A DNA stretch of 64,000 nucleotides from Octopus sinensis (Eukaryota), in contig NC_043005.1 in assembly GCF_006345805.1 (NCBI RefSeq), positions 13,764,001 through 13,828,000 on the forward strand. Direction: 5' to 3'. A program made the position numbers and the translations under genes. The notes below the pieces were generated by a model, which saw only the letters and a list, made by a program, of their open reading frames with translations, was not told the origin of the DNA and did not search any database. This document shows, one piece after another, positions 23,573-64,000 of this stretch; the first letter of the stretch is position 1; the number at the start of each line of letters is the position of its first letter.

Positions 23573-23581
23573 ATATATATA

Positions 23582-33608: not shown

Positions 33609-33680
33609 ACTCCTGGAAGGAAATAAAATTGCAAATATTGAAAATGGTTCCTTGGAAGGACTCGACACATTAAAGACTTT
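33609..33680 (+). CDS. LRR exon 2 (LLEGNKIANIENGSLEGLDTLKTL)
   Basis: 72 bp, gacacag|...|gtaagt, phase 2-2. Confidence 0.9.
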
Positions 33681-37081: not shown

Positions 37082-37153
37082 ATTCCTGGGAAATAATATG
37101 ATTACAAATATTGAAGATGGTTCCTGGAAAGGACTCAGCAAGTTACAGAATTT
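37082..37153 (+). CDS. LRR exon 3 (FLGNNMITNIEDGSWKGLSKLQNL), paralog of exon 2
   Basis: 72 bp, gatacag|...|gtaagt; flanking introns homologous to those of exon 2. Confidence 0.85.
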
Positions 37154-37247
37154 GTAAGTCGGGTATATTATTCACTAACACAGTATTACATATGTGTGGG
37201 GGGCGGGTGCGTGCGTGTGTGTGTGCCTGTGTTTGTGTGTGTGTGCC

Positions 37248-38690: not shown

Positions 38691-38759
38691 ATACCTGGAA
38701 GATAATAAAATCAACAATATAGACAGAGCTTTCAAAGGCTTGGACAATTTACATATCTT
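38691..38759 (+). CDS. LRR exon 4 (YLEDNKINNIDRAFKGLDNLHIL), 69 bp
   Basis: attgcag|...|gtaagt, 23-aa repeat, phase 2-2. Confidence 0.9.
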
Positions 38760-39436: not shown

Positions 39437-39508
39437 AGAACTGAGAAACAATAAAATTACAACCATTGATGAACGGTCCTTCCAGTTCCTTTCCAATTTA
39501 AAAGAAAT
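39437..39508 (+). CDS. LRR exon 5 (ELRNNKITTIDERSFQFLSNLKEI)
   Basis: 72 bp, ttacag|...|gtaagt. Confidence 0.9.
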
Positions 39509-39849: not shown

Positions 39850-41800
39850 CATTACACGGCCTTTAAGATTTCCCGTCTCCCAAAACCCAACCGGATTTCT
39901 TGTCCCTTGCCAAATGGTTTTCCGCCAACTTCATGGATACCTCTTTACCTCTCTTTCAGTACAATGTAGTTATCCCATGGGAAAAACTATTACTATCATT
40001 GCTGTATTGTATCTGATTACAAACCACGTTCTCTTGACCAATTCTCTCCAAATCTATCCCTATTCCACTACGATAGTGTCTTCTTTCCTCACACAGCATG
40101 CCAAATGCTACTTTAATACAAACAAGGCCTCTCCAATTATAATTAAATATTGCACCTCAGTTCGTGCTTCCACACTCTGTGACTTTCAATCTGGATAAGG
40201 GGATATACCGTGATATTTGGATGCCAGCTTCAGTGTCTCATTCTAAAATAAGAGGTACACCCTCCGAACCCACCATATTACTCTCATTTCTAATCTCTCC
40301 AAGGTTATGAAAGTGACAGTCATAAACGATGTTGATCTCTCCCTTTCACTCTCTTTCTCTCTTTCTCTTTCTCTCTCATTCTTTCACTTTATATCTCATC
40401 CTTTCCCTTTCTTTTCCCTGAATGACCACAGTACTGCTTCTGCAGAGCCAGATCTACTGGTTGCTTACCCTTTTAAGTCATTCGTCCGTGGCACCTAGCT
40501 TTAGAGAAGTTCAGTAAAAGCAACGTTATTGCTCTTAACATCACCAAAGCCTTCCAAAGTGCCAGACATGAAAATCTTCACTCATAACTTTCAGCTTGCG
40601 AACTGAACATTTCTTTCATCTTGGATCGGTAGCTTCCAATCTGATCGCACAATTGTGGAATGTACTAAAGGAGCTCTACCTGTTATATTCTCAAACAACA
40701 CAGTTGTTTCCTAGGATCCCGTCCTGTTACCTACTTTATTCTTTCTGTACATCTAGCAACGTTCACTCTTAAGAAGATGTTACGATCCTTCTCTCCTTTC
40801 TAACTTCCATTGACTTTGCATCATCCACACCACATGCAACTTACATACCACATGCTAAACTTGCTTTGATTCCATAAACGAAGGCTTGGGGTGTATCCCT
40901 CACTGAGGCCATGCCAAATTTACCTTTTAACAGCAGAAAAATTCAAGTACTGCACATACCAATAAGCACCACCGCATCACAAACCCTTTAAATACGTGTG
41001 GGACTCAGTTAAAGCTGAGTTGCTCGAAATGCCTGGTCTCGCTATCGTCGGGGATCTCTCCTGGTAAAGCATATGTTCCGTGTAGACAGGAATGCATCCC
41101 CAAAGACAAGGTCGACTCTTCAGGGTCAAAAGGTATTTCAGCTTCCAGCGTTTGTAAACACTCTACAAGTCTCAGGAAAAGCCCACATGGAGATGATGTG
41201 CGCCCGCATCTGGGACAGTGCTGCTGCTCTGCACACATCCAGTGAAGGGTCACTCACCCAACAGGTATTCAATCACTAACAGAAACACTCCAGCTTCTGG
41301 TGCACAGGTATACTTATTTCTTTATTGCCCACAAGGGGCTAAACACAGAGAGGACAAACAAGGACAGACAAACGAATTAAGTCGATTACATCGATCCCAG
41401 TGCGTAACTGGTACTTAATTTATCGACCCCGAACGGATGAAAGGCGAAGTCGACCTCGGCGGAATTTGAACTCAGAACGTAACGGCAGACGAAATACGGC
41501 TACACATTTCGCCCGGCGCGCTAACGTTTCTGCCAGCTCGCCGCCTTGCACAGGCATACTGGCATACTGACACCTCCCTCTGTCTTTTTTATCGCCACTA
41601 TAATGTACTCTATTCCTTGGAGCTAACTGGATTTGTACATCTACTGTCAATATACATCATCTCTCGTTATACTTGTTGCATCCAACTTCTCGGCTTAATG
41701 CAAACCACGATCCCTAGTCTTTTCTTACCATCATATTTCCGCTAATGTCTTCCCTGTAACTGTTGACCTGTAACAGTTAGTTTAACGGCGCCTACTCCAC
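39850..41800 (+). mobile_element. Highly degenerate CR1/L2/Jockey-group LINE RT fragment
   Basis: Decayed motifs VIALNITKAF, SWIGSFQSDRTIV and TLYKSQ..PTW at 40.5-41.2 kb; interrupted by a SINE. Confidence 0.55.
41320..41547 (-). mobile_element. tRNA-derived SINE, intronic
   Basis: Same family and tail as 7540-7765. Confidence 0.85.
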
Positions 41801-42016: not shown

Positions 42017-42088
42017 ATATTTGGACAGTAATAACATCACATATATTGAAAAAGAAGCTTTCAAAGGCCTTTACAATTTAAAGGAGCT
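42017..42088 (+). CDS. LRR exon 6 (YLDSNNITYIEKEAFKGLYNLKEL)
   Basis: 72 bp, ctacag|...|gtaagt. Confidence 0.9.
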
Positions 42089-43125: not shown

Positions 43126-43197
43126 GCGTCTCCCATCAAATCATATTGTAACTATTGATGAAAGTTGGTTCCAGGACCTTACTAATTTAACAAGCTT
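43126..43197 (+). CDS. LRR exon 7 (RLPSNHIVTIDESWFQDLTNLTSL)
   Basis: 72 bp, taacag|...|gtaagt. Confidence 0.9.
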
Positions 43198-44980: not shown

Positions 44981-44985
44981 TTGTA

Positions 44986-45200
44986 AGGGCGACGAGCAGG
45001 CAGAAACGTTAGCACGCTAGGCAAAATGCGTAGCGGTATTTCGTTTGTCTTTACGTTCTGAGTTCAAATTCTACCGAGGTCGACTTTGACTTTCATCCTT
45101 TCGGGGTCGATAAATTAACTAGCAGTTGCGTACTGGGGTCGATCTAATCGACTGGCCCACTCCTCCAAAATTTCGGGCTTTGTGCCTAGAGTAGAAAAAT
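44986..45200 (+). mobile_element. tRNA-derived SINE with 16-bp TSD
   Basis: TSD atattaggagattgta at 44970-44985 and 45201-45216. Confidence 0.9.
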
Positions 45201-45271: not shown

Positions 45272-45343
45272 ACACCTTGCTTACAATGAAATAAGGAATA
45301 TTGAAAACGGTAGCTTCAAAAACCTTGACCAATTAGAGAAGCT
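45272..45343 (+). CDS. LRR exon 8, A-type (HLAYNEIRNIENGSFKNLDQLEKL)
   Basis: 72 bp, tttttcag|...|gtaagt. Confidence 0.9.
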
Positions 45344-46319
45344 GTAAGTTGAATCAAACTTGTATATAAGTATATATTGTATTATATATATGTACAGTAA
45401 ATTCCCTCATATTTATTACCGCTGGGCCCTGAGAGTTGCTGAATAACTGAATTTTCCAGATTTCTGATCATCACTTATTAGATGGTCCAAAGCCCCTTAT
45501 AAAGCTTATTAAATCTTTATATATCCATCAGTATTATCAGTAATATTTTGTACACTGTAGAGAGGAGAAAATGGGAGAAAATATTAGTATAATTTGCGTA
45601 AAGAACAAGTTTTATTAATCTTATGAAATACAGTTATATATAGTAAATGCTGTAAAATAAAATACTGTATTTTGAAAAGCATCACTCTATCTTAAATATA
45701 GTAGAAAGTTTCCTTCTTTGCACTATTAATTAATACAAATTAGCACAACTTCTCTTGACTAAAGGAGAACACATATTCTTTTCTTTCTTTCTGGGTATCA
45801 GTTTCCTGGGGAACGATACCCAGTGGGTGCATATGCCTTTGTATGTCATTGAGATTATAAGAGTGTATCTGGAAGCAGCCGCAAGTAGATACCCTGTCAT
45901 AATCTATAGCATGCTGCTTATCTGTAGCCCTAGACAAGCGCTGGTGGAATTTTGCTCTTGAACGGGCTTTTTAATCTTGACCATCACATGTAATTGTGTA
46001 CATATTTTATATATAGCTGTATTATCCGACGTGTTCTTGCTTTTTTATACTTTGTGCAATCTTTGGCAAATTTAGCTGTTATATTTAGTGATTTAAGACA
46101 GCGTTATATATACTGTAAAAAAGACAAGGACACCGGACAGGAAAAAAATAAGAAAAAACGTTCCAAAAAAAGGAACGGAAAAAGAAACGAAATCCAGAAA
46201 GCTATGGTCCTTGACTTCTATAATTACAGAAAACTCATTAAATACAAATGATTTAAAACAAAATAACAGAAAAATATGTTAAAAATCTGCGAAACAGCAA
46301 CTCAATCCGGGGTGACCTC

Positions 46320-46680
46320 AAATTCAGTAAACAAAAAAATGGTCCATGCGTCTACAACTGCTAGAAATGTCAGATCACGAATTAAGTGGTGTAATGGAAT
46401 TGCTGGATCTAAGAAGAATATAAGATCCTTTTACTACTCATAAGTAGCATTTCTTAGATCCATTAACATTTGGCTTGGATTTCTCAACAATTTTCCATTG
46501 TATGTGGTGTTGAGTTGCTCTGAAAATTCCGTACGTGGTTTTCCAAATTGGTTGCACTACATTTATTGATGTGCCAGAACGAAGATAGGTGGTTTGCATA
46601 ACTTATCTTGAATTTGCATTCACATAACCCGATGTAATTCTTATTTTCAATTGATTTGTCTTGGAGTTTATTATACACGC
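46320..46680 (-). mobile_element. Penelope-like element GIY-YIG endonuclease fragment
   Basis: NYIGLCECKFKISYANHLSSF followed by KIVEKSKP..KKCYL. Confidence 0.75.
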
Positions 46681-47159
46681 ATGGTCAAGTGGACAAGCTT
46701 CGAGGTTTCGACATTATACCTCTAAGAGACCACTCTTAGTTGTAACTATCGAGACCCTGAAACTTGCCCGCTTGATCAGGTGTTTTTAATAAACTCCATC
46801 AAATAGAAGGCTGAAGTAACAGCTACGCTCCAAGAAAAATATTGAATTAAAGATTAAAGCCTCAAGTATATAAGTAGCGAATAGCTTATGATTTACGATA
46901 AGATTAATATAATTTAGTATTCTAGATTAGGATAGATTAAAGCATATAAGGTAATTATAAGGAAAAATGATATTAATATTCATACATAAATTATTGTTTA
47001 AAATATATAATTATAGTTATAATACATGTAGATACACTAAAATATATTTTCATACCTAAATATTGTATAAACATAATTAGTAACTGAATGATTTCAAAAT
47101 ATGAATTATCATTATATTGAAGGTGGCGGAATTGACCATATAAATAGTTAAATACAATT

Positions 47160-47487
47160 ACCCAGTCTGATCAATAAGTATCCAGATCGTTGCCCTAGTA
47201 ACAAAAGTAGAGCACGCAGACAAAAACCGCTTGGTACAGATTGACCTTAAACTCTGCTGTGCATGCGCACTAAGTTTTAACGTTCTAGTTCACTTCCGTT
47301 GTTTACAGCAGTGCTTTGAAGCAAGGTGTGCAGCGTGTAATCCTCCCATTGACCATGACAAAGCAAGTTGAGCAGAGAATCTGCATCAACTGTTCAGTTG
47401 GTCGAATCAGCTGGGACCCTCATCGTCGTAACTGACGGAGCACTCCTGACACACACACACACACAGAAACACACACACACACACACA

Positions 47488-47530
<43 letters not shown>

Positions 47531-48280
47531 TTAGCAACTACACACATTTTTTCTCTCGTTGTTTTTTCTGTGTCCCTTTCTGTAGAAGAGCGTAGGCTCG
47601 AAACGTAAAAGACTTTTTCTATTCCTGAGCATTATACTAATACATCTGTTTGTTTTGTACACCACCTGTCTTCGTCTTTTGTTGTTTTTTTTTGTTGTTT
47701 TTTTTTGTAAACTCCCTATATATAAATATATATATATATACACACATATACATATATACAGACACACAGAGATGTATATGTAAGTGTATGTGTGTATAGG
47801 TACTGATCTACGAATATGGGTGTATGCATGTGTATGCATGTGCGATACCTACACAGGAGCATACGCAAAGTTTTGAAAAAGTTTTCATAGTTCTCTATAC
47901 AATTAAGGATATCTTGTTCAACTGAAAACCAAGTGTCTTTTTGGTCGGCTGAAAACAGTTTTGGTGCAAACTTGGCAGACACGCGTCTAATATCCAAATC
48001 TTCAATGATAATGGGTTAAACTGTACCGTAAATAATCTGCACATCTTCTGATAACTCACGGATGGGGACTCGATGATTTCCCCCTCACAGCTGCGATGTT
48101 TTTCTCCGTTCTGCTGGTTGCAGGTCTCCCAGAACATTCGTCAATACCGACAATTTTCGGCCATCTTGGAAACGTCTGAACAACTCGTACACTTGTGTGT
48201 GGCTCATACACTCTTCTCCATACACTTTCTGCAATGTTACGCGGGCCACTGAGCAGGTATCGTCACGACAACTTTCTCTT
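47160..48280. mobile_element. Mariner element 5' portion split into opposite orientations (47160-47390 +; ~47870-48280 -)
   Basis: Plus strand: TIR-like gtctgatcaataagtatcc and MTKQVEQRICI. Minus strand continues DTCSV..LQKVYGEECMSHTQVYELFRRFQDGR...RRVSAKFAPKL. Confidence 0.75.
47576..47611 (+). ncRNA. Minimal hammerhead ribozyme-like motif, same family as 23200, sense orientation in LRR intron 8
   Basis: cttt-CTGTAGA-a-GAGC(gtag)GCTC-GAAAC-GTA-aaag. The flanking ~170 bp is homologous to 23150-23340. Confidence 0.6.
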
Positions 48281-49152
48281 TGGTTTTATGTATGCATTTT
48301 ACGTATGCATACTCATACGTATACTTGCAGGTCTAGACATGTGTATATGTATTTATATATTACATCTTTAGAAACTATTGTACATTTTTGATAATGTCAT
48401 TCATTGCTTGTATCTGTAGTTCTCTAATCAGTATTCCCTGTCCTCTTTTGGACGTATCAATGAACGTATGTATGTGCTCGCTACGGATTCTGAAAGAAAA
48501 CTTCATTTAATCAAGACACCCTTGGCCGGAAGAGTAGCCTATGATATACACCTTGCTTCGATATTTACCACTTCCGAGCTTACACTCGCTATGAAGCATA
48601 TCCATTCCTTAACTCTTAGATTTTTATACAGATACCTAGCAACCATGGCTGCCAGCGGTGAAATATAAAATAATTCTTTACAGCCTCTCGTACTTCAATG
48701 GGGAAAATATCCATCCATACCCTTCCACCTCAGTAAACCACCATTGTTCTTGATGATTGTGTTATATTTTATTTTCTACGGATTGTTTCAAGTTTACTTA
48801 CTTTCTGCACCTCGGTTCATGGGCCCTACATTTGTTTATATACCTGATTATTTATCTAACTATTTATCTATCTATACATGTGTGTGTGTGTGTGTGTGTG
48901 CGTGTGTGTGCGTGTGTGTGCATATATTTATGTACGAGACCATGTATGTATGAAAATACACACACACACACAAACACCTACACACACACACGCACACACA
49001 CACACATACATATATACGCATTCATAAAAATATACAAATGCATACTAACATGTACATAAACACGAAATTCTTTCATCCCATATATATAAGTGAACGTCTA
49101 AAAACCGGTCCATTTCAATTGCATTTGTTACATATATTCTTACATTTTTCAG

Positions 49153-49224
49153 AGGCCTCGAAGGCAATGGAATCACGAACATCGGAAACGGTTTTTGGCA
49201 ACACCTTCAGAATTTAAAGACATT
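49153..49224 (+). CDS. LRR exon 9, B-type (GLEGNGITNIGNGFWQHLQNLKTL)
   Basis: 72 bp, tttttcag|...|gtgagt. Confidence 0.9.
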
Positions 49225-49424
49225 GTGAGTTGGGTATATTTTGCTTGTGATTCTATATTTATTAGATTTAATATGTTTCAACGCACGTTCACACATAGAT
49301 ATACATTTATTTTTATATGTCATTATTCAGTTTAATTTCAAAATTTCTCGTCAGTAGGGACAGAGCTGGTTTCTAGATTCAAGGCTCATGTGTATGTTTA
49401 TATGCATGTATATATGTTTGTATA

Positions 49425-51600
49425 GATAAACTTAGATATGTTTCGACCAAAGATTGGTCCAGGCCATGTCTAGCTTAATAGCACCACCTGATATGATTAT
49501 TCGAATCCTGTTTAAGGCAAGTTTTGTTTAAGTCAAGTTTTGTTCAAGTAGTGAGTTCTTGTTGGGTGAGTTGTATCAAGCTTTGTTCAAGTAGTGTGTT
49601 CTTGTTGGGTGAGTTGTATCCAATTATGGGTGGCTTATCTGGTATTCTTTGAAGGAATCTATCCAGACTCCGTTTAAAGTTGATGGGATCCTTTTCCTCT
49701 TTGATCTCCTTCAGGACAATGTTAAATAGGGCAGGGCCTGTTGAGGAAAAGAAATTATGTTGCAGTGTACATGTATGTTGTGATCTTAAATTGAGCAGGG
49801 GTCGTATGGCCCGTGGTCCCAGTCTTGGATGAACCTTGAAGCTAATGTTAAGGTCGTTTGGGCAAAGTTGGTGGTATATTCTCCACATCGTACAAATGAT
49901 GTACCGCTCACGGCGACGCTGGAGGGAGTAAAGTTTCAAGGCTTTAAGGCGATCCCAATAATCGAGAGCAGCCATGCCTTCAATTTGTTTAGTGAGTGCC
50001 CTCTGGGGAGACTCAATTCTGGAGATGTTTTGTCTTGTATGGGGAGACCACAGTGGGCAGCAGTATTCAAGGTGTGGCCGTACAAGGGAGGAAAAAAGTG
50101 GTATGATGACACCTTGTTCTCTGGACCGGAAAGTTCTTAAGATCCAGGAACTCATCCTACGAGCTATATCGACCTTCTTGTTGATGTGTGCACTCCAACT
50201 GAGATCGTCATCAACAATTACACCCAGGTCTCTGATATTGTTAGAGGCTGTGAGCGGTTCCCCTGAAGGAAGAGAGTATGGTTGTTTTAGTGAGGAATTT
50301 CTTCCAAAATGCATCAGCTCAAATTTTCCCTCGTTCAGTTGCATTTTGTTTCTGTCTGCCCGTTAACTCACGGCATATAGATCAGACTGGAGTTGTGATC
50401 GGTCTGCTTCTTCATTGACGATTTGCTGGAGCTTAGTGTCATCAGCAAATATTTCCACTTTGCAGTAATGTACGACACTGGAAAAGTGGTTTATGTAAAT
50501 TATGAAGAGTAGCGGATCGAAAACAGTCCCCTGGGGAACACCGCTGGTGACTTTTGCTGGGCTTGAGTGGACTCCATCAACTACAACATGTTGTGTTCTA
50601 TTCGCCAGGAAATACTTAATCCAGTGTAGAACTTTTCCACGGATTCCAACATTTGCCAATTTTGAGAGTAGGATATTATGGTCTACCCTGTCGAACGCTT
50701 TACTGAAGTCAAGATATATGACGTCAGAGTTCGAACCTGTTCCCAAGGCTTTGAGTACATCTTCAATGTGGTGTAAGAGCAGTGTTAGACAGTCCCTGCC
50801 ACAGCGAAAGTCATGCTTAGTTGTATTTATGAGTTTGTGGGTCTCCAGGAAGTCAGCTATCCTTGATCTTAGCACTCTTTCAAACACTTTAATGATGTGG
50901 GAGGTGAGTGAGATTGGGCGATAGTTGACTGCGAGGGATCTGTTTCCCTGTTTGAAAACCGGGATGACCGACTGGGATAGAAACTGTTTCGGTATATAAC
51001 CTGCGTCTAACGAATTTCTCCAGAGGTTGGTCAGAGGGACTCCAAGTTGGTGTCTACATTCCTTCAGGAGACTAGCGGTGAATCTATCAGGGCCTACAGC
51101 AGTGTAATATTTGACCTCATTTATTGCTGCTACGATGTCGGTGGCAGTGAAGGTTATGTCTGCGATTTTGTGTTGGGAATCAACTTCGTTCGTTTCCTTC
51201 ACGTCAATATCAGTGGGAACACTGAAGACAGAGCAGTATTGTTTCTGCAGTATTTCTGCCATTTCTTTAGCATCGTGTTGGGGAATGCCGTTATCATCAA
51301 TCAATGGCCCAATGGGTGAGACAGTGGTTCTATGCTTATTTGCATAAGAATAGAACACTTTTGGGTTCTGTTTGATGTTTTTGATAACCCACTGTTCCTC
51401 CTCAGCTCTTTGATTTTCAATGGAGGTTTTCATGTTGGTCTGCAGATGAAGTTTTTCCATCTCTAGTCTTTTCATTGTTGTTGAATGTGGATGTTGTGTG
51501 TGGGAATATTTCAATTGGTTGATTTTTTGTTGAGTCTTTTGATGCGCCTGATGAGTGTTTTTTTTCTTTTTAGGGAGCCGGTTTCTGTTTGTGTTAGTAG
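49425..51600 (-). mobile_element. CR1-clade LINE, 5'-truncated, RT nearly intact (single in-frame stop at 50363-50365)
   Basis: YLDFSKAFDRVDH, SGVPQGT, FADDTK and RPHLEYCCPLWSP. ORFs 50363-51793 and 49544-50344 are in the same frame. The N-terminal part of the long ORF is microsatellite read-through. Confidence 0.92.
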
Positions 51601-51645
51601 ATTTCGTGGGAGCGTGTTTAGAGCATGTATAGGTGACAATGTTTT

Positions 51646-51736
<91 letters not shown>

Positions 51737-51856
51737 TGTATATACAGGCGTGTATAAGTGTGTATCGTTGTATTGAAGGATGTAGGTATACATATTATAT
51801 TCTTCTACTTACACATGTCTTTCATTTATTCTTATATATAGATACTTATATATAGA

Positions 51857-51905
<49 letters not shown>

Positions 51906-51909
51906 GTGC

Positions 51910-51968
<59 letters not shown>

Positions 51969-52473
51969 GATAGACATGCACGCATGCACATACATATGCA
52001 ATTATACACACACATTCACACATACACACACATACAGAGTCAAAGATACAAATATACGTACATAAATATAGATTTTATGTTTCCACACACATACGTACAT
52101 ATACATATATTTTTATACGTCATTCAGTTCAAAATTTCTTACCAATAGAAAAGGAGCTTGTTTCTAACCTAGATCCAAGGTTCGTGTGTATGCATGTTTG
52201 TATGCGTGTATATATGTTTGTATATATAATATATATATATATATATATATGCGTGTATATGTGTGTATGATGAGAAAGATGCATTTGTGGCGATGGGCGT
52301 GTGTGTACATATATTCTTCTACTTACCTTATCTCAGGCCTCCAGGCTCCTCTCAGCTATTCCTTTTCTATACAACCCACTTTTCCTACCAAAATCTCAAT
52401 AACTCTTCTTCACACTTTAATGTCCTCTAATGATCTGTCTTTTCATTTTATGGTTTGTCTTTTCATTTTTCAG

Positions 52474-52545
52474 AAACCTTGCTTATAATGAAATATCGAA
52501 CATTGAAGAAGGTGAATTCGAAAACCTTGACAGTTTAGAGAAGCT
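52474..52545 (+). CDS. LRR exon 10, A-type (NLAYNEISNIEEGEFENLDSLEKL)
   Basis: 72 bp, tttttcag|...|gtaagt. Confidence 0.9.
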
Positions 52546-53017
52546 GTAAGTTGAATCAGACTTGTTGTGTATGTTTATGAATTTTATATATGTATAGTAA
52601 ACTCCCTCATATTCAACACCAACAGGGTCCAGAGAGTTGCTGAATAGCAACTTTTCCAGATATAGGATCATTTATTAAATGGTACAAAGCACCTTACAGA
52701 ACTCACTAAAACTCTAAATATCCAGTGCGCGGAATCGCCCTTGTGTGTCATTGTGACATACAAAATGGAGTGTTGCTTTTCAAACTAGAGTATTTTGTTT
52801 TACTGCACTTATTGCATGTACGTGTATTTTTAAGATTAGTAAACCTTATTTCTTACTCAAACTATACTTGTATTTTCCCCTATTTCCCTCATTTCTACTA
52901 TTTTCAAAATATCACTAATAGATATATAAAGTTTTAATGAATTTTGTAAGCTGCTTTGAACTATTTGATAAGTGATAATCAGTTATCAGGAACATTCAGT
53001 ATATATATATATATATA

Positions 53018-53064
<47 letters not shown>

Positions 53065-53249
53065 GGCAAGAAATAATTTTTATTTCTTGTTATAGAAACA
53101 AAAGGGTTTATAGGACTGCAAAAAAAGTGCTCAAATGTAATTGAGACAGAGATAAAAAAAAAACATTGATCATAGAACAAACATCAAATTCGAGTCAACG
53201 ACTTTATATATAACACCATACCTCGAAATATTTGATCATATATAAATAT

Positions 53250-53426
53250 TACCGTGGCTGTGTGGCAAGTAGCTTGCTTACCAACCACATGGTTCCGGGT
53301 TCAGTCCCACTGCGTGGCACTTTCGGCCAAGTGTCTTCTACTATAGCCTCAGACCGACCAAATCCTTGGGAGTGAACTTCGTAGACGGAAACTGAAAGAA
53401 GCCCGACGTAAATATATATATGTATG

Positions 53427-53458
<32 letters not shown>

Positions 53459-53715
53459 TATGAAATGATTTTTTTTTGACGAACTCTTTTGTTTGAGTGG
53501 AGTAAGAAAATATTTTTAGTCGAGTGTTTTTATATATATATATATATGTTTGTGTGTCTGAGTTTGTCCCACCACCATCGCTTGACAACCGATGTCGGTG
53601 TGTTTACGTCCCCGTAACTTAGCGTTTGGCAAAGAAGACCGATAGATTGATTCCTGGGATGGATTTGTTCGACTAAAGGTGGTGCTCCATCATGTCCTCA
53701 GTTAAATGACTGACA
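53250..53715 (+). mobile_element. Bipartite SINE, intronic
   Basis: Head and 3' half match 22488-22895. Confidence 0.8.
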
Positions 53716-54103
53716 AAAATATAGGAATATAAAGTATACATATATAAAAAAAAACACTCGACTAAAAATATTTTCTTACTCCACTCAAACAAAAGAGTAC
53801 GTCAAAAAAAAATCATTTCATGAAAATCATGGTAGGTTGGAGTCCAGGAGCAAAAAGTTTCACAGAATCAAGTCAAACACACCTATGGACATTTCGGGAG
53901 TTCATTGCCGCTGTTCGGTTACGAGTTAAAGTGCAATGAGCCCCCTCTTCACCACGATGAACAGGAAACTCAACAAAAAGTTTTTTTTATTCTTTTGTTG
54001 AGTTTCCAGCTCATCCTGATGAGGGTTCATTGCCGAGATGAAGGGATCATTCCTGCATCTCGATCCTTTGACCTTACATTTATCTATCTATTTATCTAAT
54101 ATA

Positions 54104-55066
54104 CGAGGGGCGTTCAATAAGTAATGCCCCTGACCCACTTCCCATAGCAGTAGAGCAACGAAACTTGGCACAGTTATTAGTCTTTTTCTACATAGGAACC
54201 ACCCAGAGTTACGCATTTCTCCCATCGTTTGATGCGGCTCTGGAGACCGTTTTTGTAGATGAACCCAGCTTGGTCCTCCAACCTCAACGTGACTTCAGAA
54301 ATCAAGGCTGCATCATCTGGAAAACGCTTTCCTTTCAAAAACAACTTCATGACTGGGAAGAGGTGAAAATCAGAGGGTGCAAGGTCAGGAGAGTAGGGGG
54401 ATGGGGGAGGAGTTCATAGCCGCACGCCTATGCTTCTGATCTGGCGACAAGCGAGTTGTGGACCGGAGCGTTGTCCTGCAGGAGGAGGATGCCTTTGCTG
54501 ATCTAGCCCCGCCTCTTGATTTTGATAACTTCTCTTAATTTCCTCAAAAGTGAAGCATAATAGGCTCCTGTAATTGTGGTACCCTTTGCCAGGAAATCTG
54601 TCATCACTACTCCGTCCTGGTCCCAGAAGACTGTGAGCATGACCTTGCCAGCGGAGGGCTGCACCCTTGCCTTCTTTGGAGAGGGTGAGTCATGGTGCTT
54701 CCACTGCATTGACTGGGCTTTGGTCTCTGGATCATCGTGATGGACCCAGGTTTCATTCTTTGTAATCAGTCTTTTGAAAAATTTTGACTCATCTTCTTGG
54801 CACATCTCCAAATTCATCCTCGAGCACTCGACGCGTTCTTGCTTCTGGAAAGGTGTGAGCAACCTGGGAATCCATCTGGCAGACACCGTTTGCATATGCA
54901 AATGGTCATGAATGATAGTTTGTACAGACCCGGTACTAATCTTGACCTCATGGGCTATTTGGCGAGTAATTATGCGTCGATCTTCCAAAATGGCACCCTC
55001 AACTTGACGGACAGATGCCTCATCAATGGCAGAAGCGGAGCGACCAGATCTGGGAGCTGTTTCCAC
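54104..55066 (-). mobile_element. Mariner (DD34D-type) element, 3' two-thirds with one TIR; 5' end lost
   Basis: TA|CGAGGGGCGTTCAATAAGTAATGCCC TIR at 54104. ORF 54503-55066 (SARWIPRLL, ETWVHH), then LQDNAP and HPPYSPDLAPSDFHLF through stops; terminal TAA at 54177. Confidence 0.92.
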
Positions 55067-56755
55067 AGGTAATCAGAAGATCGGATGGTTCATATTTATA
55101 GATATTTATTTATATATTACATTTTTTACATATATATATCATATCATTCAGATCATATCATTCGGATTATTAGCGCTTTCTCCCATTCCAGTGGGGTTTT
55201 CAAATCAAATCAATTCCTTTGTGGGGAATTTGGTCATTTTATAGAGTTTCGTAGTAGTGAGGAGGAACAAGATAGTATAAGAGGGTGAGGTGGGTGAGGA
55301 GGAAGTGAGAGAGAGAACATGTGTGTGTGTATGTGTGTGTGTGTGTGTGTGTGCGTTTGTATCTGAGGCTAAAGAGAAAAAGGGGAGGGGAGAGGGAAGA
55401 AGAAGTATTTCTTTTGGCCTGCTGGACCCCCTAGGGTTTTCTAAGAATTTTAGCTCTCTGTCCATTCTGGTGTCACTGAGTGTGTGTTGGTGGGTAGGCT
55501 GGCCGGTCAAATGTCATTTGGGGTCATACTTTCTATGATCGTTTTGTGGAGGTGTGTGTGTGTGTGTGTGTGTGTCTGTATATGTTACCTGTTATATACA
55601 TTATATTGTTTTTGTAATTTACTTGATCTTTACTTGCCAATTGTCATTCTAATTTTAACCTTCCTATGATATGCAATTTTCAAGATGGTGTAATTTGATT
55701 GTTCATTTTGATTCGATAGAAGGTGGGTTTTTCTCTAATATTTCATGTGTAAGCATGTATATATATATATAGTGACATTGAAGGACGCATCTTTTTTACA
55801 ATCTATATAGTAGAACATTTAGTATATGTCTGTATGTGATATATATATATATATATATATATATCTGTGTATGTATATATGTATATTGCCTGTTATATAC
55901 ATTATATTATTATCTTTATAATTTACTTCCATCTTTACCTTTTAATTGTCACTTTAATTTTAACTTTCCTATATATACAATTTTCAAGATGGTGTAATTT
56001 GGTTTGTTCATTTTGAACCGATAAAAGGGTTTTTTCAAATATTTTATGTATAAGTCTGTGTGTATATATGTATTGGTATAAATATCAACACACAAAAATA
56101 TTTTTTTCTTCTTCTCCATTTCCTCCCTTATTTTTATTTATTTTTTTAGTTTTTGGTTTTATATTTATTTTTATTTTCCCTTTTCTCTTTTTGTCTCTCT
56201 CCCCTTCTCCAAACACACAGAGACACACACACACGCACACAAACACACACGGACACACAGACACACACACACACCTCCACAAAACGATCATAGAAAGTAT
56301 GACCCCAAATGACATTTGTCCGGCCAGCCTACCCACCAACACACACTCAGTGACACCAGAATGGACAGAGAAAACCCAGGCCAAAGGAAATACTTCTTCT
56401 TCCCTCTCCCCTCCCCTTTTTCTCTTTAGCCTCAGATACAAACGCACACACACACACACACACATACACACACACACATACACACACATACACATACACA
56501 CATGTTCTCTCTCTCACTTCCTCCTCACCCACCTCACCCTCTTATACTATCTTGTTCCTCCTCACTACTACGAAACTCTATAAAATGACCAAATTCCCCA
56601 CAAAGGAATTGACTTGATTTGAAAACCCCACTGGAATGGGAGAAAGCGCTAATAATCCGAATGATATGATCTGAATGATATGATATATATATGTAAAAAA
56701 TGTAATATATAAAAAAATATCTATAAATATGAACCATCCAATCTTCTGATTACCT
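55067..56755. repeat. ~500-bp inverted repeat (55067-~55579 and ~56257-56755) around a ~680-bp spacer containing a ~160-bp direct repeat
   Basis: Mirror ORFs 55085+ and 56534- are nearly identical. Spacer repeats at ~55590-55750 and ~55880-56040. Confidence 0.9.
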
Positions 56756-56798
56756 CATTTCTTCTAATATATAATACCTGTACATCATCTCCAAACCT

Positions 56799-56841
<43 letters not shown>

Positions 56842-57102
56842 ATATATATATAAATGCGTGTATATGTGTGTATGATGAGAAAGATCCATTTGTGGTGATG
56901 GGTGTATATGTACATATATTCTTCTACTTATCCATGTCTCTCATTTATCCTTAGCTTATCTCAGGTCTTCAGGCTCCTCTCAGCTATTCTAATTCTATAC
57001 AACCTCACCTTTCCTACAACAATCTCAGTAACTCTTGTTCATACTTTAATGTCCTCTAAAGGTCTGTCTTTTCATTTTATGGTTTGTCTTTTCATTTTTC
57101 AG

Positions 57103-57174
57103 AAACCTTGCTTATAATGAAATATCGAATATTGAAGAAAGTAGCTTCAAAAACCTCGGCAGTTTGGAGGAGCT
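57103..57174 (+). CDS. LRR exon 11, A-type (NLAYNEISNIEESSFKNLGSLEEL)
   Basis: 72 bp; donor is gtaaat, weaker than the gtaagt of its homologs. Confidence 0.85.
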
Positions 57175-57202
57175 GTAAATTGAATCAAACTTGTGTGTGT
57201 GT

Positions 57203-57244
<42 letters not shown>

Positions 57245-57366
57245 TGGTGTGTTTTGTGTGTGTGTGCGTGTGTGTGTGTGTGCGTGTGTGTGTGCGTTTT
57301 GGTGTGTGTTTGTGCGTGCGTGTGTGTGTGTGTGCGTGTGTATGTGCGTGTGCGTGTGTGTGTGTA

Positions 57367-57415
<49 letters not shown>

Positions 57416-57575
57416 ATGTATGCGTAGTATATATGTACAGTAAATTCCCTCACATTCAGTACCAACGGGTCCTCAAGGTTGTGGAATAACTCAAGTTTCC
57501 AAGTATCTGATTATCATTTATCAAAACCCGGTGCATTTCAATTGCATCTGCTACATATACCCTTACATTTTTCAG

Positions 57576-57647
57576 AGACCTGAGCAAAAACAGAATTAAG
57601 AAAATCGGAGATGATTCTTGGCAACACCTTCAGAATTTAAAGAAATT
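57576..57647 (+). CDS. LRR exon 12, B-type (DLSKNRIKKIGDDSWQHLQNLKKL)
   Basis: 72 bp, tttttcag|...|gtgagt. Confidence 0.9.
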
Positions 57648-57867
57648 GTGAGTTGGGTATATTTTGCCTCTCATTCTATATTTATTAGATTTTATATGTT
57701 TGTACGCACATTCACCACACATATAATATACATATATTTTTATATGACCTTATTCAGTTTTATTTCAAAATTTCTCGTCGTCAGTAGAGAAAGAGCTGAT
57801 ATCTGACCTAGATTCAAGGCTCATGTGTATGTTTATATGCATGTATATATATTTGTGTATATATATA

Positions 57868-57911
<44 letters not shown>

Positions 57912-57918
57912 GTATATA

Positions 57919-57982
<64 letters not shown>

Positions 57983-58274
57983 TGTATGTATGTATGTATG
58001 TATGTATGTATGTATGTATGTATGTATGTATGTATGTATAGGCGTGTATATGTGTGTATCGTTTTATGATGGATGTAGGTGTACATATTATATTCTTCTA
58101 CTTACACATGTCATTCATTATTCTTAGCTTATCTCAGGTCTTCAGACTCTTCTCAATTACTCCTTATCTATACTGCCCACCATTCCTACCAAAATCTCAA
58201 TAACTCTTCTTCACACTTTAATGTCCTCTAATGATCTGTCTTTTCATTTTATTGTTTGTCTTTTCATTTTTCAG

Positions 58275-58346
58275 AATCCTTTCTAGGAATCAAATATCGA
58301 ATATTGAAGAAAGTAGCTTCAAAAACCTCGTCAATTTGGAGGAACT
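58275..58346 (+). CDS. LRR exon 13, A-type (ILSRNQISNIEESSFKNLVNLEEL)
   Basis: 72 bp, AG/GT, phase 2-2. Confidence 0.9.
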
Positions 58347-58845
58347 GTAAGTTGAATTAGACTTGTATATATAAACGCATGGTATATATGTACAGTACAC
58401 TCCCTCATATTCAACACCAATAGGTTCTGAGGTCTACTGAAAAACGTAATTTTCCAGATATCTGATCATCACTTATCAAGTAGTCCAAAGCACGATAAAA
58501 ACTGATTAGAATTCTATATATCCAGTGGGCGCATTCGCCTTTGTATGTAATTTTGACATACAAAATGGAGTGTCCCTTCTCAAATACAGCATTTTATTTT
58601 ACTGCATTTACTGTATATACCCGTATTTTATAAGATTAATAAAACCTGTTCTTTATGCAAATTATGCTTATATTTTCCGCTACTCTCCCTCCTTTCTACT
58701 GTGTTCGAGATATTATTGATAGTACTGATGGATATATAGAGTTTTAATGTGTTTTGTAAGGTGATTTGGAACCATCTAATAAACGATGGTCAGATATCTG
58801 GAAAATTCAGTTATTGAGCAATCCTCAGGTCCCATTGGTATTTTC

Positions 58846-58889
<44 letters not shown>

Positions 58890-58896
58890 CTGTGTG

Positions 58897-58928
<32 letters not shown>

Positions 58929-59410
58929 ATGTGTTGTTGAAAATGCAACTAAATTTCAAAAACTCGTAAATGTTTAAAATATATTCATTTACATAAATAC
59001 CAAACTAGTTTCAGCAATATTTTTTGTTTATTAATGGTAAAAGTTTAAAATCAGAAAAAAGCATCTTTAAAAGTTTCAATGTTGACAAACTAAAACGTTT
59101 CACTGTTGACAAATTAAAATGTTTCAATGTTGATAAATTATCATGTTCAAAACAGAAGGTGTAAGTTTTTCGAAGAACTTAGTCTATGTTCTTAGATGTG
59201 GTGGTGACTACATTGGTCAAACCAGCTTAACTTTGAGGGATAGACTTACGGTCCACAAGCAACAACCCGGGATCCCACCACTAGGAAAATTCCCGTAAGC
59301 ATGCAGCTAGACATACACCCTAGATACCAAATCTCCATCTCTATCATGCAATGCACTAAAAACCGGTGCATTTCAATTGCATCTGCTACATATACCCTTA
59401 CATTTTTCAG

Positions 59411-59482
59411 AGACCTGAGCAAAAACAGAATTAAGAAAATCGGAGATGATTCTTGGCAACACCTTCAGAATTTAAGAGAATT
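59411..59482 (+). CDS. LRR exon 14, B-type (DLSKNRIKKIGDDSWQHLQNLREL)
   Basis: 72 bp, AG/GT, phase 2-2. Confidence 0.88.
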
Positions 59483-59685
59483 GTGAGTTGGGTAATTTTG
59501 CCTCTCATTCTATATTTATTAGATTTTATATGTTTGTACGCACATTCACACACACATATATATATACATATATTTTTATATGACCTTATTCAGTTTTATT
59601 TCAAAATTTCTCGTCAGTAGAGAAAGAGCTGATATCTGACCTAGATTCAAGGCTCATGTGTATGTTTATATGCATGTATATATAT

Positions 59686-59754
<69 letters not shown>

Positions 59755-59758
59755 TATA

Positions 59759-59820
<62 letters not shown>

Positions 59821-60108
59821 TGTAGTATGTATGTATGTATGTATGTATGTATGTATGTATGTATGTATGTATAGGCGTGTATATGTGTGTATCGTTGTAT
59901 TGATGGATGTAGGTGTACATATTATATTCTTCTACTTACACATGTCATTCATTATTCTTAGCTTATCTCAGGTCTTCAGACTCTTCTCAATTACTCCTTA
60001 TCTATACTGCCCACCATTCCTACCAAAATCTCAATAACTCTTCTTCACACTTTAATGTCCTCTAATGATCTGTCTTTTCATTTTATTGTTTGTCTTTTCA
60101 TTTTTCAG

Positions 60109-60180
60109 AATCCTTTCTAGGAATCAAATATCGAATATTGAAGAAAGTAGCTTCAAAAACCTCGTCAATTTGGAGGAACT
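60109..60180 (+). CDS. LRR exon 15, A-type, identical to exon 13
   Basis: 72 bp, AG/GT, phase 2-2. Confidence 0.88.
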
Positions 60181-60677
60181 GTAAGTTGAATTAGACTTGT
60201 ATATATAAACGCATGGTATATATGTACAGTACACTCCCTCATATTCAACACCAATAGGTTCTGAGGTCTACTGAAAAACGTAATTTTCCAGATATCTGAT
60301 CATCACTTATCAAGTGGTCCAAAGCACGATAAAAACTGATTAGAATTCTATATATCCAGTGGGCGCATTCGCCTTTGTATGTAATTTTGACATACAAAAT
60401 GGAGTGTCCCTTCTCAAATACAGCATTTTATTTTACTGCATTTACTGTATATACCCGTATTTTATAAGATTAATAAAACCTGTTCTTTATGCAAATTATG
60501 CTTATATTTTCCGCTACTTCCCTCCTTTCTACTGTGTTCGAGATATTATTGATAGTACTGATGGATATATAGAGTTTTAATGTGTTTTGTAAGGTGATTT
60601 GGACCATCTAATAAACGATGGTCAGATATCTGGAAAATTCAGTTATTGAGCAATCCTCAGGTCCCATTGGTATTTTC

Positions 60678-60755
<78 letters not shown>

Positions 60756-61233
60756 ATGTGTTGTTGAAAATGCAACTAAATTTCAAAAACTCGTAAATGT
60801 TTAAAATATATTCATTTACATAAATACCAAACTAGTTTCAGCAATATTTTTTGTTTTTAATGGTAAAAGTTTAAAATCAGAAAAAAGCATCTTTAAAAGT
60901 TTCAATGTTGACAAACTAAAACGTTTCACTGTTGACAAATTAAAATGTTTCAATGTTGATAAATTATCATGTTCAAAACAGAAGGTGTAAGTTTTTCGAA
61001 GAACTTAGTCTATGTTCTTAGATGTGGTGGTGACTACATTGGTCAAACCAGCTTAACTTTGAGGGATAGACTTACGGTCCACAAGCAACAACCCGGGATC
61101 CCACCACTAGGAAAATTCCCGTAAGCATGCAGCTAGACATACACCCTAGATACCAAATCTTCCATCTCTATCAATGCACTAAAAACCGGTGCATTTCAAT
61201 TGCATCTGCTACATATACCCTTACATTTTTCAG

Positions 61234-61305
61234 AGACCTGAGCGAAAACAGAATTAAGAAAATCGGAGATGATTCTTGGCAACACCTTCAGAATTTAACG
61301 AAATT
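61234..61305 (+). CDS. LRR exon 16, B-type (DLSENRIKKIGDDSWQHLQNLTKL)
   Basis: 72 bp, AG/GT, phase 2-2. Confidence 0.88.
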
Positions 61306-61510
61306 GTGAGTTGGGTATATTTTGCCTCTCATTCTATATTTATTAGATTTTATATGTTTGTACGCACATTCACACACACATATATATATACATATATTTT
61401 TATATGACCTTATTCAGTTTTATTTCAAAATTTCTCGTCAGTAGAGAAAGAGCTGATATCTGACCTAGATTCAAGGCTCATGTGTATGTTTATATGCATG
61501 TATATCTATT

Positions 61511-61551
<41 letters not shown>

Positions 61552-61588
61552 ATATATTATGTATATATATATATGTATATATAATATA

Positions 61589-61621
<33 letters not shown>

Positions 61622-61901
61622 TGATGTATGTAGTATGTATGTATGTATGTATGTATGTATGTATAGGCGTGTATATGTGTGTATCGTTGTATTGATGGAT
61701 GTAGGTGTACATATTATATTCTTCTACTTACAACATGTCATTCATTATTCTTAGGCTTATCTCAGGTCTTCAGACTCTTCTCAATTACCCTTATCTATAC
61801 TGCCCACCATTCCTACCAAAATCTCAATAACTCTTCTTCACACTTTAATGTCCTCTAATGATCTGTCTTTCTTTTTTATTGTTTGTCTTTTCATTTTTCA
61901 G

Positions 61902-61973
61902 AATCCTTTCTAGGAATCAAATATCGAATATTGAAGAAAGTAGCTTCAAAAACCTCGTCAATTTGGAGGAACT
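61902..61973 (+). CDS. LRR exon 17, A-type, identical to exon 13
   Basis: 72 bp, AG/GT, phase 2-2. Confidence 0.88.
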
Positions 61974-63080
61974 GTAAGTTGAATTAGACTTGTATTATAA
62001 AACGCATGGTATATATGTACAGTACACTCCCTCATATTCAACACCAATAGGTTCTGAGGTCTACTGAAAAACGTAATTTTCCAGATATCTGATCATCACT
62101 TATCAAGTGGTCCAAAGCACGATAAAAACTGATTAGAATTCTATATATCCAGTGGGCGCATTCGCCTTTGTATGTAATTTTGACATACAAAATGGAGTGT
62201 CCCTTCTCAAATACAGCATTTTATTTTACTGCATTTACTGTATTACCCGTATTTTATAAGATTAATAAAACCTGTTCTTTATGCAAATATGCTTATATTT
62301 TCCGCTACTTCCCTCCTTTCTACTGTGTTCGAGATATTATTGATAGTACTGATGGATATATAGAGTTTTAATGTGTTTTGTAGGTGATTTGGACCATCTA
62401 ATAAACGATGGTCAGATATCTGGAAAATTCAGTTATTGAGCAATCCTCAGGTCCCATTGGTATTTTCATATATATATATATTATATATAATATATATATA
62501 TATATATATAATATATATGTGTGTGTGTGTGTGTGTGTTGTGTGTGTGTGTGTGTGTGTGTGTCTGTGTGTGTCTGTGTGTGTGTGTGTGTGTGTGTGAA
62601 AATGTGTTGTTGAAAATGCAACTAAATTTCAAAAACTCGTAAATGTTTAAAATATATTCATTTACATAAATACCAAACTAGTTTCAGCAATATTTTTTTG
62701 TTATTAATGGTAAAAGTTTAAAATCAGAAAAAAGCATCTTAAAAAGTTTCAATGTTGAACAACTAAAACGTTTCACTGTTGACAAATTAAAATGTTTCAA
62801 TGTTGATAAATTACCATGTTCAAAACAGAAGGTGTAAGTTTTTCGAAGAACGTAGTCTATGTTCTTAGATGTGGTGGTGACTACATTGGTCAAACCAGCT
62901 TAACTTTGAGGGATAGACTTACGGTCCACAAGCAACAACCCGGGATCCCACCACTAGGAAAATTCCCGTAAGCATGCAGCTAGACATACACCCTAGATAC
63001 CAAATCTTCCATCTTTATCAATGCACTAAAAACCGGTGCATTTCAATTGCATCTGCTACATATACCCTTACATTTTTCAG

Positions 63081-63152
63081 AGACCTGAGCGAAAACAGAA
63101 TTAAGAAAATCGGAGATGATTCTTGGCAACACCTTCAGAATTTAAAGAAATT
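63081..63152 (+). CDS. LRR exon 18, B-type (DLSENRIKKIGDDSWQHLQNLKKL)
   Basis: 72 bp, AG/GT, phase 2-2. Confidence 0.9.
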
Positions 63153-63324
63153 GTGAGTTGGGTATATTTTGCCTCTCATTCTATATTTATGAGATTTTAT
63201 ATGTTTCTACGCCCATGCACACATAGATATACATATATTTTTATATGTCATTATTCAGTTTAATTTCAAAATTTCTCGTCAGTAGAGAAAGAGCTGATAT
63301 CTGACCTAGCTCCAAGGCTCGTAT

Positions 63325-64000
63325 GTATGAATGTGCGGGTAGGGGTGAGGATGTAGGATGAGGGGAAGATGTGGGGTGGGGTGGGGTGAGGGTGTAGGGT
63401 GAGGATGTGCGAGTAGGGGTGAGTATGTGGGGTGGGGGATGTTCGGGTATGTGGGAGTGATATTAGGAAAGTGTCTGTGGACCAGGAGGTCACATATGTT
63501 GTGGGCTCGTTTGAAGGAGGGAAGGGGCAGGTTGGGGAAGATGTGCGAAGTGGAAGGGTCGGAGTGGAGTCGCCGGAAGGCTCGGAGAATGGTTCGTTGG
63601 AGGGGCAGGGTGGAGTGATAGTAGGTGAGGAGAAACGGGAGACGGGCAACGGCGGGACGCGTGCGTGAAGAGAGAGAGCAGAGGCACGATCCACGGAAGT
63701 GCTCTGGCAAGGACGGTGTGAATAGTGGTCAGAGGAGATCCAAGCAGGATGAACTGTTGAGGAGTTGAGACTGAGTCTCAAAGTCATGGTTGTCACTGCA
63801 GAGCCTGCGCAGAGGAATTGGGAGTAGAGGATGGAGAGCTTGGTGCGTGTAGGGTGGGTGCAGGATAATTTGAGTTATGAGTGTGAGTCGGTGTGTTTGT
63901 TGTGGGTGGAGGTAGTGAGAGCAGAGTTGTGTATGTTGACCGAAATGGCGAGAAAGGCGACGGAAGTGTTGGAAATGATGCAGGAGAATTCCAGGGAGGG
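63325..64000 (-). mobile_element. Penelope-like element RT C-terminal/thumb fragment running off the window; GIY-YIG replaced by C-rich low-complexity sequence
   Basis: Minus strand PSLEFSCII...HTDSHS*L..SCTHP..SILYSQF/LRRLCSDNHDFETQS and LPFLLTYY..LHSDPSTSHIFPNLPLPSFKRAHNICDLLV. Confidence 0.85.

Follow-up and report, generated by a model that had tools for sequence, protein, structure and literature searches.

A tandem array of near-identical two-exon units, each exon encoding one leucine-rich repeat (LRR), was identified in a gene of Octopus sinensis. The gene lies on the + strand of a stretch of 64,000 nucleotides (NCBI RefSeq assembly GCF_006345805.1, contig NC_043005.1, positions 13,764,001 to 13,828,000 of the forward strand; hereafter the window, to which all unqualified coordinates refer). 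One gene is found on this strand, and the window includes its 5' part only: exon 1 and 17 exons with a single LRR each. Exons 12-18 lie in 3.17 head-to-tail units of ~1.83 kb, each composed of an A-type exon, a B-type exon and their introns, as had been described in an original prediction made from the letters of the stretch (~3.2 near-identical units of 1.8 kb). The explanation that we favour, and hold to be fairly probable, is that the window contains the 5' part of an octopod LRR-ectodomain gene which belongs to an adhesion G protein-coupled receptor (GPCR) family and in which the A+B unit was recently amplified in tandem.

Exons were identified by scanning for open stretches of 66-78 bp between AG and GT, in which the first base completes the preceding codon. 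This phase-specific scan succeeded; a strict LRR motif scan missed exons, because the motif straddles exon junctions, and its relaxed version was swamped by noise. All 17 LRR exons are preceded by phase-2 introns, and 16 of them are 72 bp long (69 bp for exon 4). The acceptors consist of a pyrimidine tract followed by CAG, and the donors are GTAAGT or GTGAGT, except for the exon starting at 57103 (GTAAAT). The equivalent scan of the - strand gave a single chance match, which is not an LRR. When joined, the exons encode an unbroken series of 24-residue LRRs. Exon 1 was located by tblastn with Octopus homologues (E=1.5e-6 with the O. sinensis protein P0002) and its sequence was then read directly. 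The predicted product (468 residues) was matched in Pfam by LRR_8 (364 bits) and LRRNT (28.8 bits, cutoff 25.8), and a search for further copies found LRR sequences in the window in these exons only. Given exon 1 at 32232-32416, the exon numbering (8-18) and the coordinates of the original prediction are correct, and the splice-flanked scan agrees with its description of exons 8-18 as symmetric phase-2 exons of 72 bp with one LRR each. The exons and the array are as follows:

32232-32416, + strand: exon 1, with ATG, hydrophobic signal peptide and LRRNT cysteine cap CxxxCxC...C (MFCVIQAQLKFLLISVCILLVYANQTDVCEAICKCSKHSTINCTNQNLTSIPQAIPADVVT); donor TT/GTAAGT, phase 2
33609-33680, + strand: exon 2, LRR, 72 bp, phase 2
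37082-37153, + strand: exon 3, LRR, 72 bp; duplicate of exon 2
38691-38759, + strand: exon 4, LRR, 69 bp, phase 2; 23-residue repeat, the sole LRR exon that is not 72 bp long
39437-39508, + strand: exon 5, LRR, 72 bp
42017-42088, + strand: exon 6, LRR, 72 bp
43126-43197, + strand: exon 7, LRR, 72 bp
45272-45343, + strand: exon 8, old B-type LRR (HLAYNEIRNIENGSFKNLDQLEK); 19/72 nucleotides (nt) differ from the array B exons
49153-49224, + strand: exon 9, old A-type LRR (GLEGNGITNIGNGFWQHLQNLKT); homology including flanks, 49098-49428
52474-52545, + strand: exon 10, old B-type LRR; homology including flanks, 52184-53058
57103-57174, + strand: exon 11, B-type LRR of intermediate age; weaker donor (GTAAAT); 9/72 nt differ from the array B exons
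57523-63329, + strand: tandem array, 5.8 kb, 3.17 head-to-tail units of ~1.83 kb, containing exons 12-18
57576-57647, + strand: exon 12, A-type LRR (DLSKNRIKKIGDDSWQHLQNLKK)
58275-58346, + strand: exon 13, B-type LRR (ILSRNQISNIEESSFKNLVNLEE)
59411-59482, + strand: exon 14, A-type LRR, ending ...LQNLRE
60109-60180, + strand: exon 15, B-type LRR; same DNA as exon 13
61234-61305, + strand: exon 16, A-type LRR (DLSEN...LQNLTK)
61902-61973, + strand: exon 17, B-type LRR; same DNA as exons 13 and 15
63081-63152, + strand: exon 18, A-type LRR (DLSEN...LQNLKK); final visible exon, the gene continuing past the window end (64000)

The window was compared with itself by BLASTN: 57523-60752 aligned to 59358-62546 with 96.9% identity over 3247 bp, and 57523-59664 aligned to 61181-63329 with 93.5% identity. 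Each unit contains, in order, an A exon, a 627-bp intron, a B exon and a ~1.06-kb intron, and carries (TA)n and (TG)n tracts and a 24-bp minisatellite. Cut at the A-exon starts, the full units are 1835, 1823 and 1847 bp long and are followed by a partial fourth. In a MAFFT alignment, the full units differed from one another by 18, 32 and 37 substitutions per ~1.8 kb (1.0-2.2%, i.e. 98-99% identity at aligned positions), the other difference between units being the length of the (TA)n, (TATG)n and (TG)n tracts. Substitutions separate the units by 1-2% only, so that the amplification of the A+B unit is very recent. The DNA of the three array B exons (58275, 60109 and 61902) is identical. The four array A exons differ at 1-4 nt, and none of these differences is synonymous: position 8 of LxxLxLxxN is K or E, and the next repeat has KK, RE or TK at its positions 2-3. 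It is suggestive that all of them affect x positions in the strand motif of the concave face, which are predicted to face the ligand.

Microsatellite-rich units that are 98-99% identical are the kind of sequence that assemblers handle worst, and the array was read from one assembly. It was accordingly considered whether the locus truly has one A+B unit, or fewer than three, which the assembler expanded or which was multiplied by concatenation of haplotypes. Such an artefact is very improbable because the copies are mutually distinct: the three full units are separated by 18-37 substitutions and have their own microsatellite lengths, and the four A exons have different codons. Moreover, 3.17 tandem copies cannot come from two haplotypes, older and independent copies of the module lie upstream, and the same type of duplication is seen at the protein level in paralogues from other species.

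If the array is genuine, as we take it to be, a 1.83-kb unit with two consecutive LRR exons and their introns has been tandemly amplified to 3.17 copies, likely by unequal homologous recombination or replication slippage, and probably with the aid of the microsatellites within the unit. Each extra unit would add exactly 48 residues (two turns of the solenoid) with the frame and the repeat register undisturbed; exons that are symmetric, in phase 2 and one repeat long leave both intact, which is why the protein would tolerate such amplification. Ordinary tandem amplification of this kind is the simplest reading of the array. The in-frame modularity that had been predicted holds in this respect, as any whole number of A+B units preserves the reading frame. 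Further unequal exchange in the array is plausible, since the units are 98-99% identical over 1.8 kb, and so is variation in length among alleles.

Other features of the array region were recorded. The 24-bp minisatellite (TTAAAATGTTTCAATGTTGACAAA, 3.4 copies) is kept in the B-to-A intron of each unit (59067-59147, 60893-60973 and 62739-62820), and the (TG)n and (TATA)n tracts near the unit boundaries are possible recombination substrates. After 63329, the fourth unit is replaced by a G-rich sequence with degenerate 33-bp repeats (63330-64000), at a point at which a (TATA)n tract is present in the others. No second copy of this G-rich sequence was found in the window or in three fetched Octopus loci; it may have been inserted, or the array may truly end there.

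Diverged relatives of the unit were found upstream. The A-type exon at 49153 and its flanks are 84-86% identical to the array A regions. Among the B-type exons, the one at 52474 is 77-80% identical to the array B regions over 700-900 bp, the one at 57103 is ~81% identical over 390 bp (~90% around the exon), and the one at 45272 is ~80% identical to that at 52474. The older copies that had been predicted at exons 8-11 are thus real, but they do not alternate cleanly: exons 8-11 are B, A, B and B, and the array continues with three A-B pairs and a final A. Neither an A-type exon nor a pseudo-exon was found between 52474 and 57103 by blastn-short and tblastn. Old and young exons differ at 12-26% of nt, mostly at nonsynonymous sites, and their flanking introns differ about equally. 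In the old exons the frame is still open, and both the splice sites and the scaffold residues (L, N, I, F/W, L) are retained, which is consistent with maintained exons in which exposed positions are free to evolve. Exon 11, with its GTAAAT donor and its place outside the alternation, is a candidate alternative or decaying exon; skipping of this exon would restore the A/B alternation.

Transposon remnants were detected in the introns of this region. In the intron between exons 10 and 11, where an A-type exon would be expected, there is a mariner-type transposase fragment (54503-55066, - strand; Pfam Transposase_1, E=3e-23), which is adjoined by a ~500-bp inverted repeat (55067-55573 versus 56755-56253, 89%). 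The intron between exons 9 and 10 contains a reverse-transcriptase open reading frame of the long interspersed nuclear element (LINE) type (49544-51793, - strand; Pfam RVT_1, E=3e-21), which is ~71% identical to a copy in the O. sinensis locus L001.

A separate and older duplication of 3.1-3.5 kb was found at the 5' end of the gene, where a segment from within exon 1 (its 3' part) through intron 1 to exon 2 was copied, giving exon 3. Its identity is mosaic: 97% between 32332-33309 and 35425-36406, but 82% in the stretch with the exon (33362-33695 versus 36840-37168). Either a later gene conversion or more rapid change close to the exon is suggested by this pattern. A by-product of this duplication is a pseudo-exon:

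35403-35510, + strand: pseudo-copy of the 3' part of exon 1, in intron 2, with an in-frame stop and without ATG or signal peptide

Intragenic tandem duplication is therefore recurrent in the window gene: earlier rounds gave exons 8-11 (10-25% diverged), a separate duplication gave exons 2 and 3, and independent rounds occurred in paralogues of other Octopus species.

Homologues were searched with the predicted protein. The best matches were O. bimaculoides XP_014776846 (IGFALS-like) and O. sinensis XP_036369232 (LRRC15-like), both with 44% identity, and after the Octopus proteins came generic LRR proteins at ~30%. At the DNA level, a B exon with ~15 bp of intron aligned to two exons of the O. 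bimaculoides gene with 79-83% identity; interspersed repeats common to the window, O. sinensis and O. bimaculoides are 87-96% identical. By these similarities, the window gene is a paralogue or distant orthologue of the XP_014776846/XP_036369232 genes. The Octopus homologues share a layout: a signal peptide and LRRNT are followed by 8-15 LRRs, then by an LRRCT and by a conserved Cys-rich module that ends CC.G..CNKNDF. One paralogue is named 'ly6/PLAUR domain-containing' by NCBI.

The homologous loci were inspected for the sequence that follows the LRRs. Few LRR exons are present in the O. sinensis loci L001 and L003. In the O. bimaculoides locus L002 (CM046629.1 745661-781358, reversed), the LRR exons are likewise 72 bp long and in phase 2. 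The 617-residue O. bimaculoides model P0145 ends at a TAA stop inside a CAG/GTAAAA donor (L002 25450-25700), and on the same strand, downstream of this LRR model, lie GAIN, GPS (…CSCYHLTSFAILM…) and 7tm_2 exons (L002 26324-35698), of which the GPS/7tm_2 exons match XP_014776848 ('GPR126-like'). With the stop of the LRR model inside a donor and these exons downstream in the same orientation, annotation has probably divided a single gene at L002 into an LRR ectodomain and an adhesion GPCR. The junction between the two parts holds an assembly gap (25871-26324).

NCBI lists the LRR part and the seven-transmembrane (7TM) part under separate genes in three Octopus genomes, and several alternative C-termini are annotated. 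Taken at face value, these models would describe a soluble or lipid-anchored LRR protein without 7TM, with the short Octopus models real and the neighbouring adhesion GPCRs separate genes. This is unlikely, although truncated secreted isoforms may well be made. The annotated C-termini start precisely where an exon ends and continue into intron sequence, the stop of P0145 lying within a GTAA donor, and the tail of P0145 is homologous to the start of the GAIN region at the N-terminus of P0167, an O. bimaculoides model that runs GAIN-GPS-7TM. The O. sinensis models P0129, P0133 and P0136 link ectodomain exons to the last exon of the receptor, with its C-terminal AETNF motif, and LRR/Cys-rich models and short adhesion-GPCR models lie on the same scaffolds in Octopus genomes. 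Finally, LRR-bearing members have been reported in an octopus-specific, co-localised expansion of adhesion GPCRs ('group 3'), in which LRRs were found in 5/22 members and which is expressed in the axial nerve cord, suckers, skin and gills (PMC6408891; Ritschard et al., 2019).

The window gene most likely belongs to this octopus-specific family, with a predicted order of LRR, LRRCT, Cys-rich module (Ly6/uPAR-like), HormR/GAIN-GPS and 7tm_2. The original prediction had hinted instead at the LRR-containing GPCR (LGR) or glycoprotein-hormone-receptor genes, in which the LRR ectodomain stands on a rhodopsin-family 7TM. One LRR per 72-bp phase-2 exon is typical of LGR genes. This exon design is, however, not specific to LGRs, as it is also found in the Octopus family and in Tetrahymena LRR genes. 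In-frame skipping of LRR exons is documented in LGR5 (PMC11678308). There were no LGRs among the best 120 matches, and the Octopus family of the best matches continues into the Cys-rich module, GAIN/GPS and a secretin/adhesion-type 7tm_2, not into a rhodopsin-type 7TM, so that assignment to the LGRs is extremely doubtful.

Several points weigh against the assignment to the adhesion-GPCR family and the amplification model as a whole. The 3' architecture of the window gene is taken solely from homologues at 44% identity, and no identical or near-identical protein was found in the protein collection searched. The LRRCT, Cys-rich, GAIN linker, GPS and 7TM peptides of the O. bimaculoides homologue gave no matches in the window; the upstream 32 kb is therefore without a paralogue tail, and the 3' part of the gene lies outside the window. 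The Ly6/uPAR-like label of the Cys-rich module is a pattern-level label, suggested by the cysteine pattern and one NCBI name; Pfam returned no family for this module, and an AlphaFold2 model of P0134 (14-sequence alignment; mean confidence score pLDDT 43.6) was too poor for a fold search. The array is known from one assembly. When the divergence of A exons was compared with that of introns in the three unit pairs, Fisher p values of 0.035, 0.39 and 0.066 were obtained, with about three mutational events involved. Positive selection on the A exons was considered and set aside, as their excess over introns is too weak to claim it. With these points in view, a recently expanded LRR-ectodomain gene of the adhesion-GPCR family is still the reading that we favour. 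The exon structure, the array, the low divergence of its units, the homology with the Octopus proteins, and the architecture and 24-residue isoform steps of these homologues were observed; from them we infer the recombination mechanism, the adhesion-GPCR 3' end, the inclusion of all array exons in mRNA and any present-day copy-number polymorphism.

LRR number was compared across the family: the Octopus paralogues have ~8-15 LRRs and the window gene at least 17, so that repeat number varies between paralogues and species. Near-identical repeats with a period of two were found in other proteins. In the O. sinensis protein P0002, LRR3 and LRR5 share 24/24 residues and several other repeats share 20-22/24, and in O. 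bimaculoides P0145, LRR10 and LRR12 share 21/24. These period-2 duplicates are independent cassette duplications in other genes and species. Since duplication acted repeatedly in the window gene and independently in its paralogues, LRR number is evolutionarily labile across this Octopus family.

The isoforms annotated by NCBI for the Octopus paralogues, all of which are computational models, were aligned. The O. sinensis isoforms are 525, 525, 501, 501, 477 and 477 residues long and those of O. bimaculoides 617, 593 and 593, with steps of exactly 24 residues, i.e. one LRR exon present or absent. The O. sinensis paralogue has at least seven predicted isoforms, and two of these are of equal length with different exons at one position. 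It is conceivable, and in our view rather unlikely, that the ectodomain is length-polymorphic in the germline through gain or loss of the 1.8-kb unit, and that single LRR exons are skipped combinatorially in transcripts, so that a graded set of receptor forms would be expressed across individuals and cells. If this were true, then, taken with the published expression of this receptor group in suckers, skin and axial nerve cord, it would speak for a diversified system of recognition, in parallel to the expansion of octopus protocadherins.

A stronger version was also weighed, in which allelic copy-number variation and combinatorial or mutually exclusive cassette splicing form a programmed system, with a repertoire like that of the variable lymphocyte receptors (VLRs) or Dscam. 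Near-identical 1.8-kb repeats are good substrates for unequal recombination, every A-exon difference lies at a predicted ligand-facing x position, and the O. sinensis isoforms just described differ by LRR-exon use. Against this, the window is without flanking donor cassettes or an incomplete germline gene of the VLR kind; the exons are colinear, look additive and have strong splice sites of the constitutive type, with no sign of a Dscam-like cluster of alternatives for one slot; the three identical B exons add length and no sequence diversity; and the paralogue isoforms are computational models. We give this version next to no credence, and the analogies to VLRs and Dscam that had been drawn for this gene find no support in its canonical splice sites and colinear exons. 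Nothing in the window shows a programmed diversity system, and the array represents an ordinary route of growth for such genes.

Repeats in the surroundings of the gene were recorded as well. Upstream of it, a ~400-bp inverted repeat (23574-23970 versus 24571-24176, 99%) and a 138-bp direct repeat (23970-24107 versus 24529-24666, 100%) probably represent a young transposon or foldback structure. A short interspersed repeat at 7530-7767, 41310-41547 and 44985-45153 is also present in O. sinensis and O. bimaculoides loci (80-94%), in support of the octopod origin of the window.

The array is a clean and very young case of growth of an animal LRR receptor ectodomain, in which a two-exon cassette was copied with its introns and the frame and register were kept automatically. 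In addition, a lineage-specific adhesion-GPCR family appears to be cut in two by current Octopus annotations, with LRR ectodomains and 7TM halves in different gene models, and domain surveys would therefore undercount its LRR-bearing members. As LRR number is labile between paralogues and species, the family is a reasonable place to seek copy-number polymorphism and exon-skipping isoforms. The main value of the array lies in what it indicates about how this octopus receptor family diversifies, and about its split annotation.

Several known systems were compared with the window gene. LGR and glycoprotein-hormone-receptor genes have an LRR ectodomain with one or few repeats per exon and phase-2 introns, and the window gene likewise has one repeat per exon and phase-2 introns. 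LGRs differ in their rhodopsin-type 7TM and their fixed, conserved LRR number, whereas the nearest homologues of the window gene have GPS and 7tm_2. The vertebrate proteins ADGRA2 and ADGRA3 (GPR124/125) are adhesion GPCRs with N-terminal LRRs, in which LRR, LRRCT and further modules are followed by HormR, GAIN and 7TM2. When compared by layout only, they appear to share this domain logic with the Octopus proteins; unlike them, ADGRA2/ADGRA3 have ~4 LRRs and an Ig domain, and the Octopus 7TM parts are named ADGRG2/G6-like by NCBI.

Lamprey VLRs and insect Dscam1 resemble the window gene only in the idea that modular cassettes could yield many receptor forms. A VLR gene is incomplete in the germline and is completed somatically with LRR cassettes that flank it and lack splice signals, whereas the window gene is a complete, colinear series of exons with canonical AG/GT. 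Dscam has mutually exclusive exon clusters, whereas the A and B exons of the window encode successive turns of the solenoid and look additive.

The octopus adhesion GPCRs of group 3 (PMC6408891; XP_014776846/XP_014776848 and XP_036369232-238) share with the window gene the signal peptide, the LRRNT, the 24-residue LRRs on 72-bp phase-2 exons and the period-2 near-identical LRRs, and show the best sequence similarity (44% for protein, 79-83% for nucleotides of B-type exons). The window gene differs in having more LRRs (at least 17 versus ~8-15), much longer, transposon-laden introns and a far younger array (1-2% divergence); its membership is presumed, as the LRRCT/Cys-rich/GAIN/7TM part lies outside the window. 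Exon cassettes are not described in PMC6408891, and a literature search on cephalopod LRR exon arrays and 72-bp LRR exons gave nothing specific; for the library searched, the original statement that no such description was known in cephalopod LRR genes holds.

The closest documented parallel is found in the LRR gene families of Tetrahymena, in which arrays of exons of exactly 90 bp, >96% phase-2 introns, clonal expansion and variable exon number were described, and in which the authors attribute exon expansion to unequal crossing-over (PMC6564038, 2019). Both systems have one LRR per symmetric exon, an extreme phase-2 bias and expanding intron-plus-exon units, and the window array likewise consists of symmetric same-phase exons in near-identical head-to-tail intron-plus-exon units. 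They differ in exon length (72 bp here versus 90 bp), in lineage (animal versus ciliate) and in scale (one gene or small family versus thousands of genes); moreover, the unit amplified here is a two-exon cassette, and no retrotransposon association with the unit itself was seen. Both the probable gene family (PMC6408891) and the mechanism in other LRR genes (PMC6564038) are already published, and the array exemplifies a known evolutionary mechanism rather than a system of a new kind.

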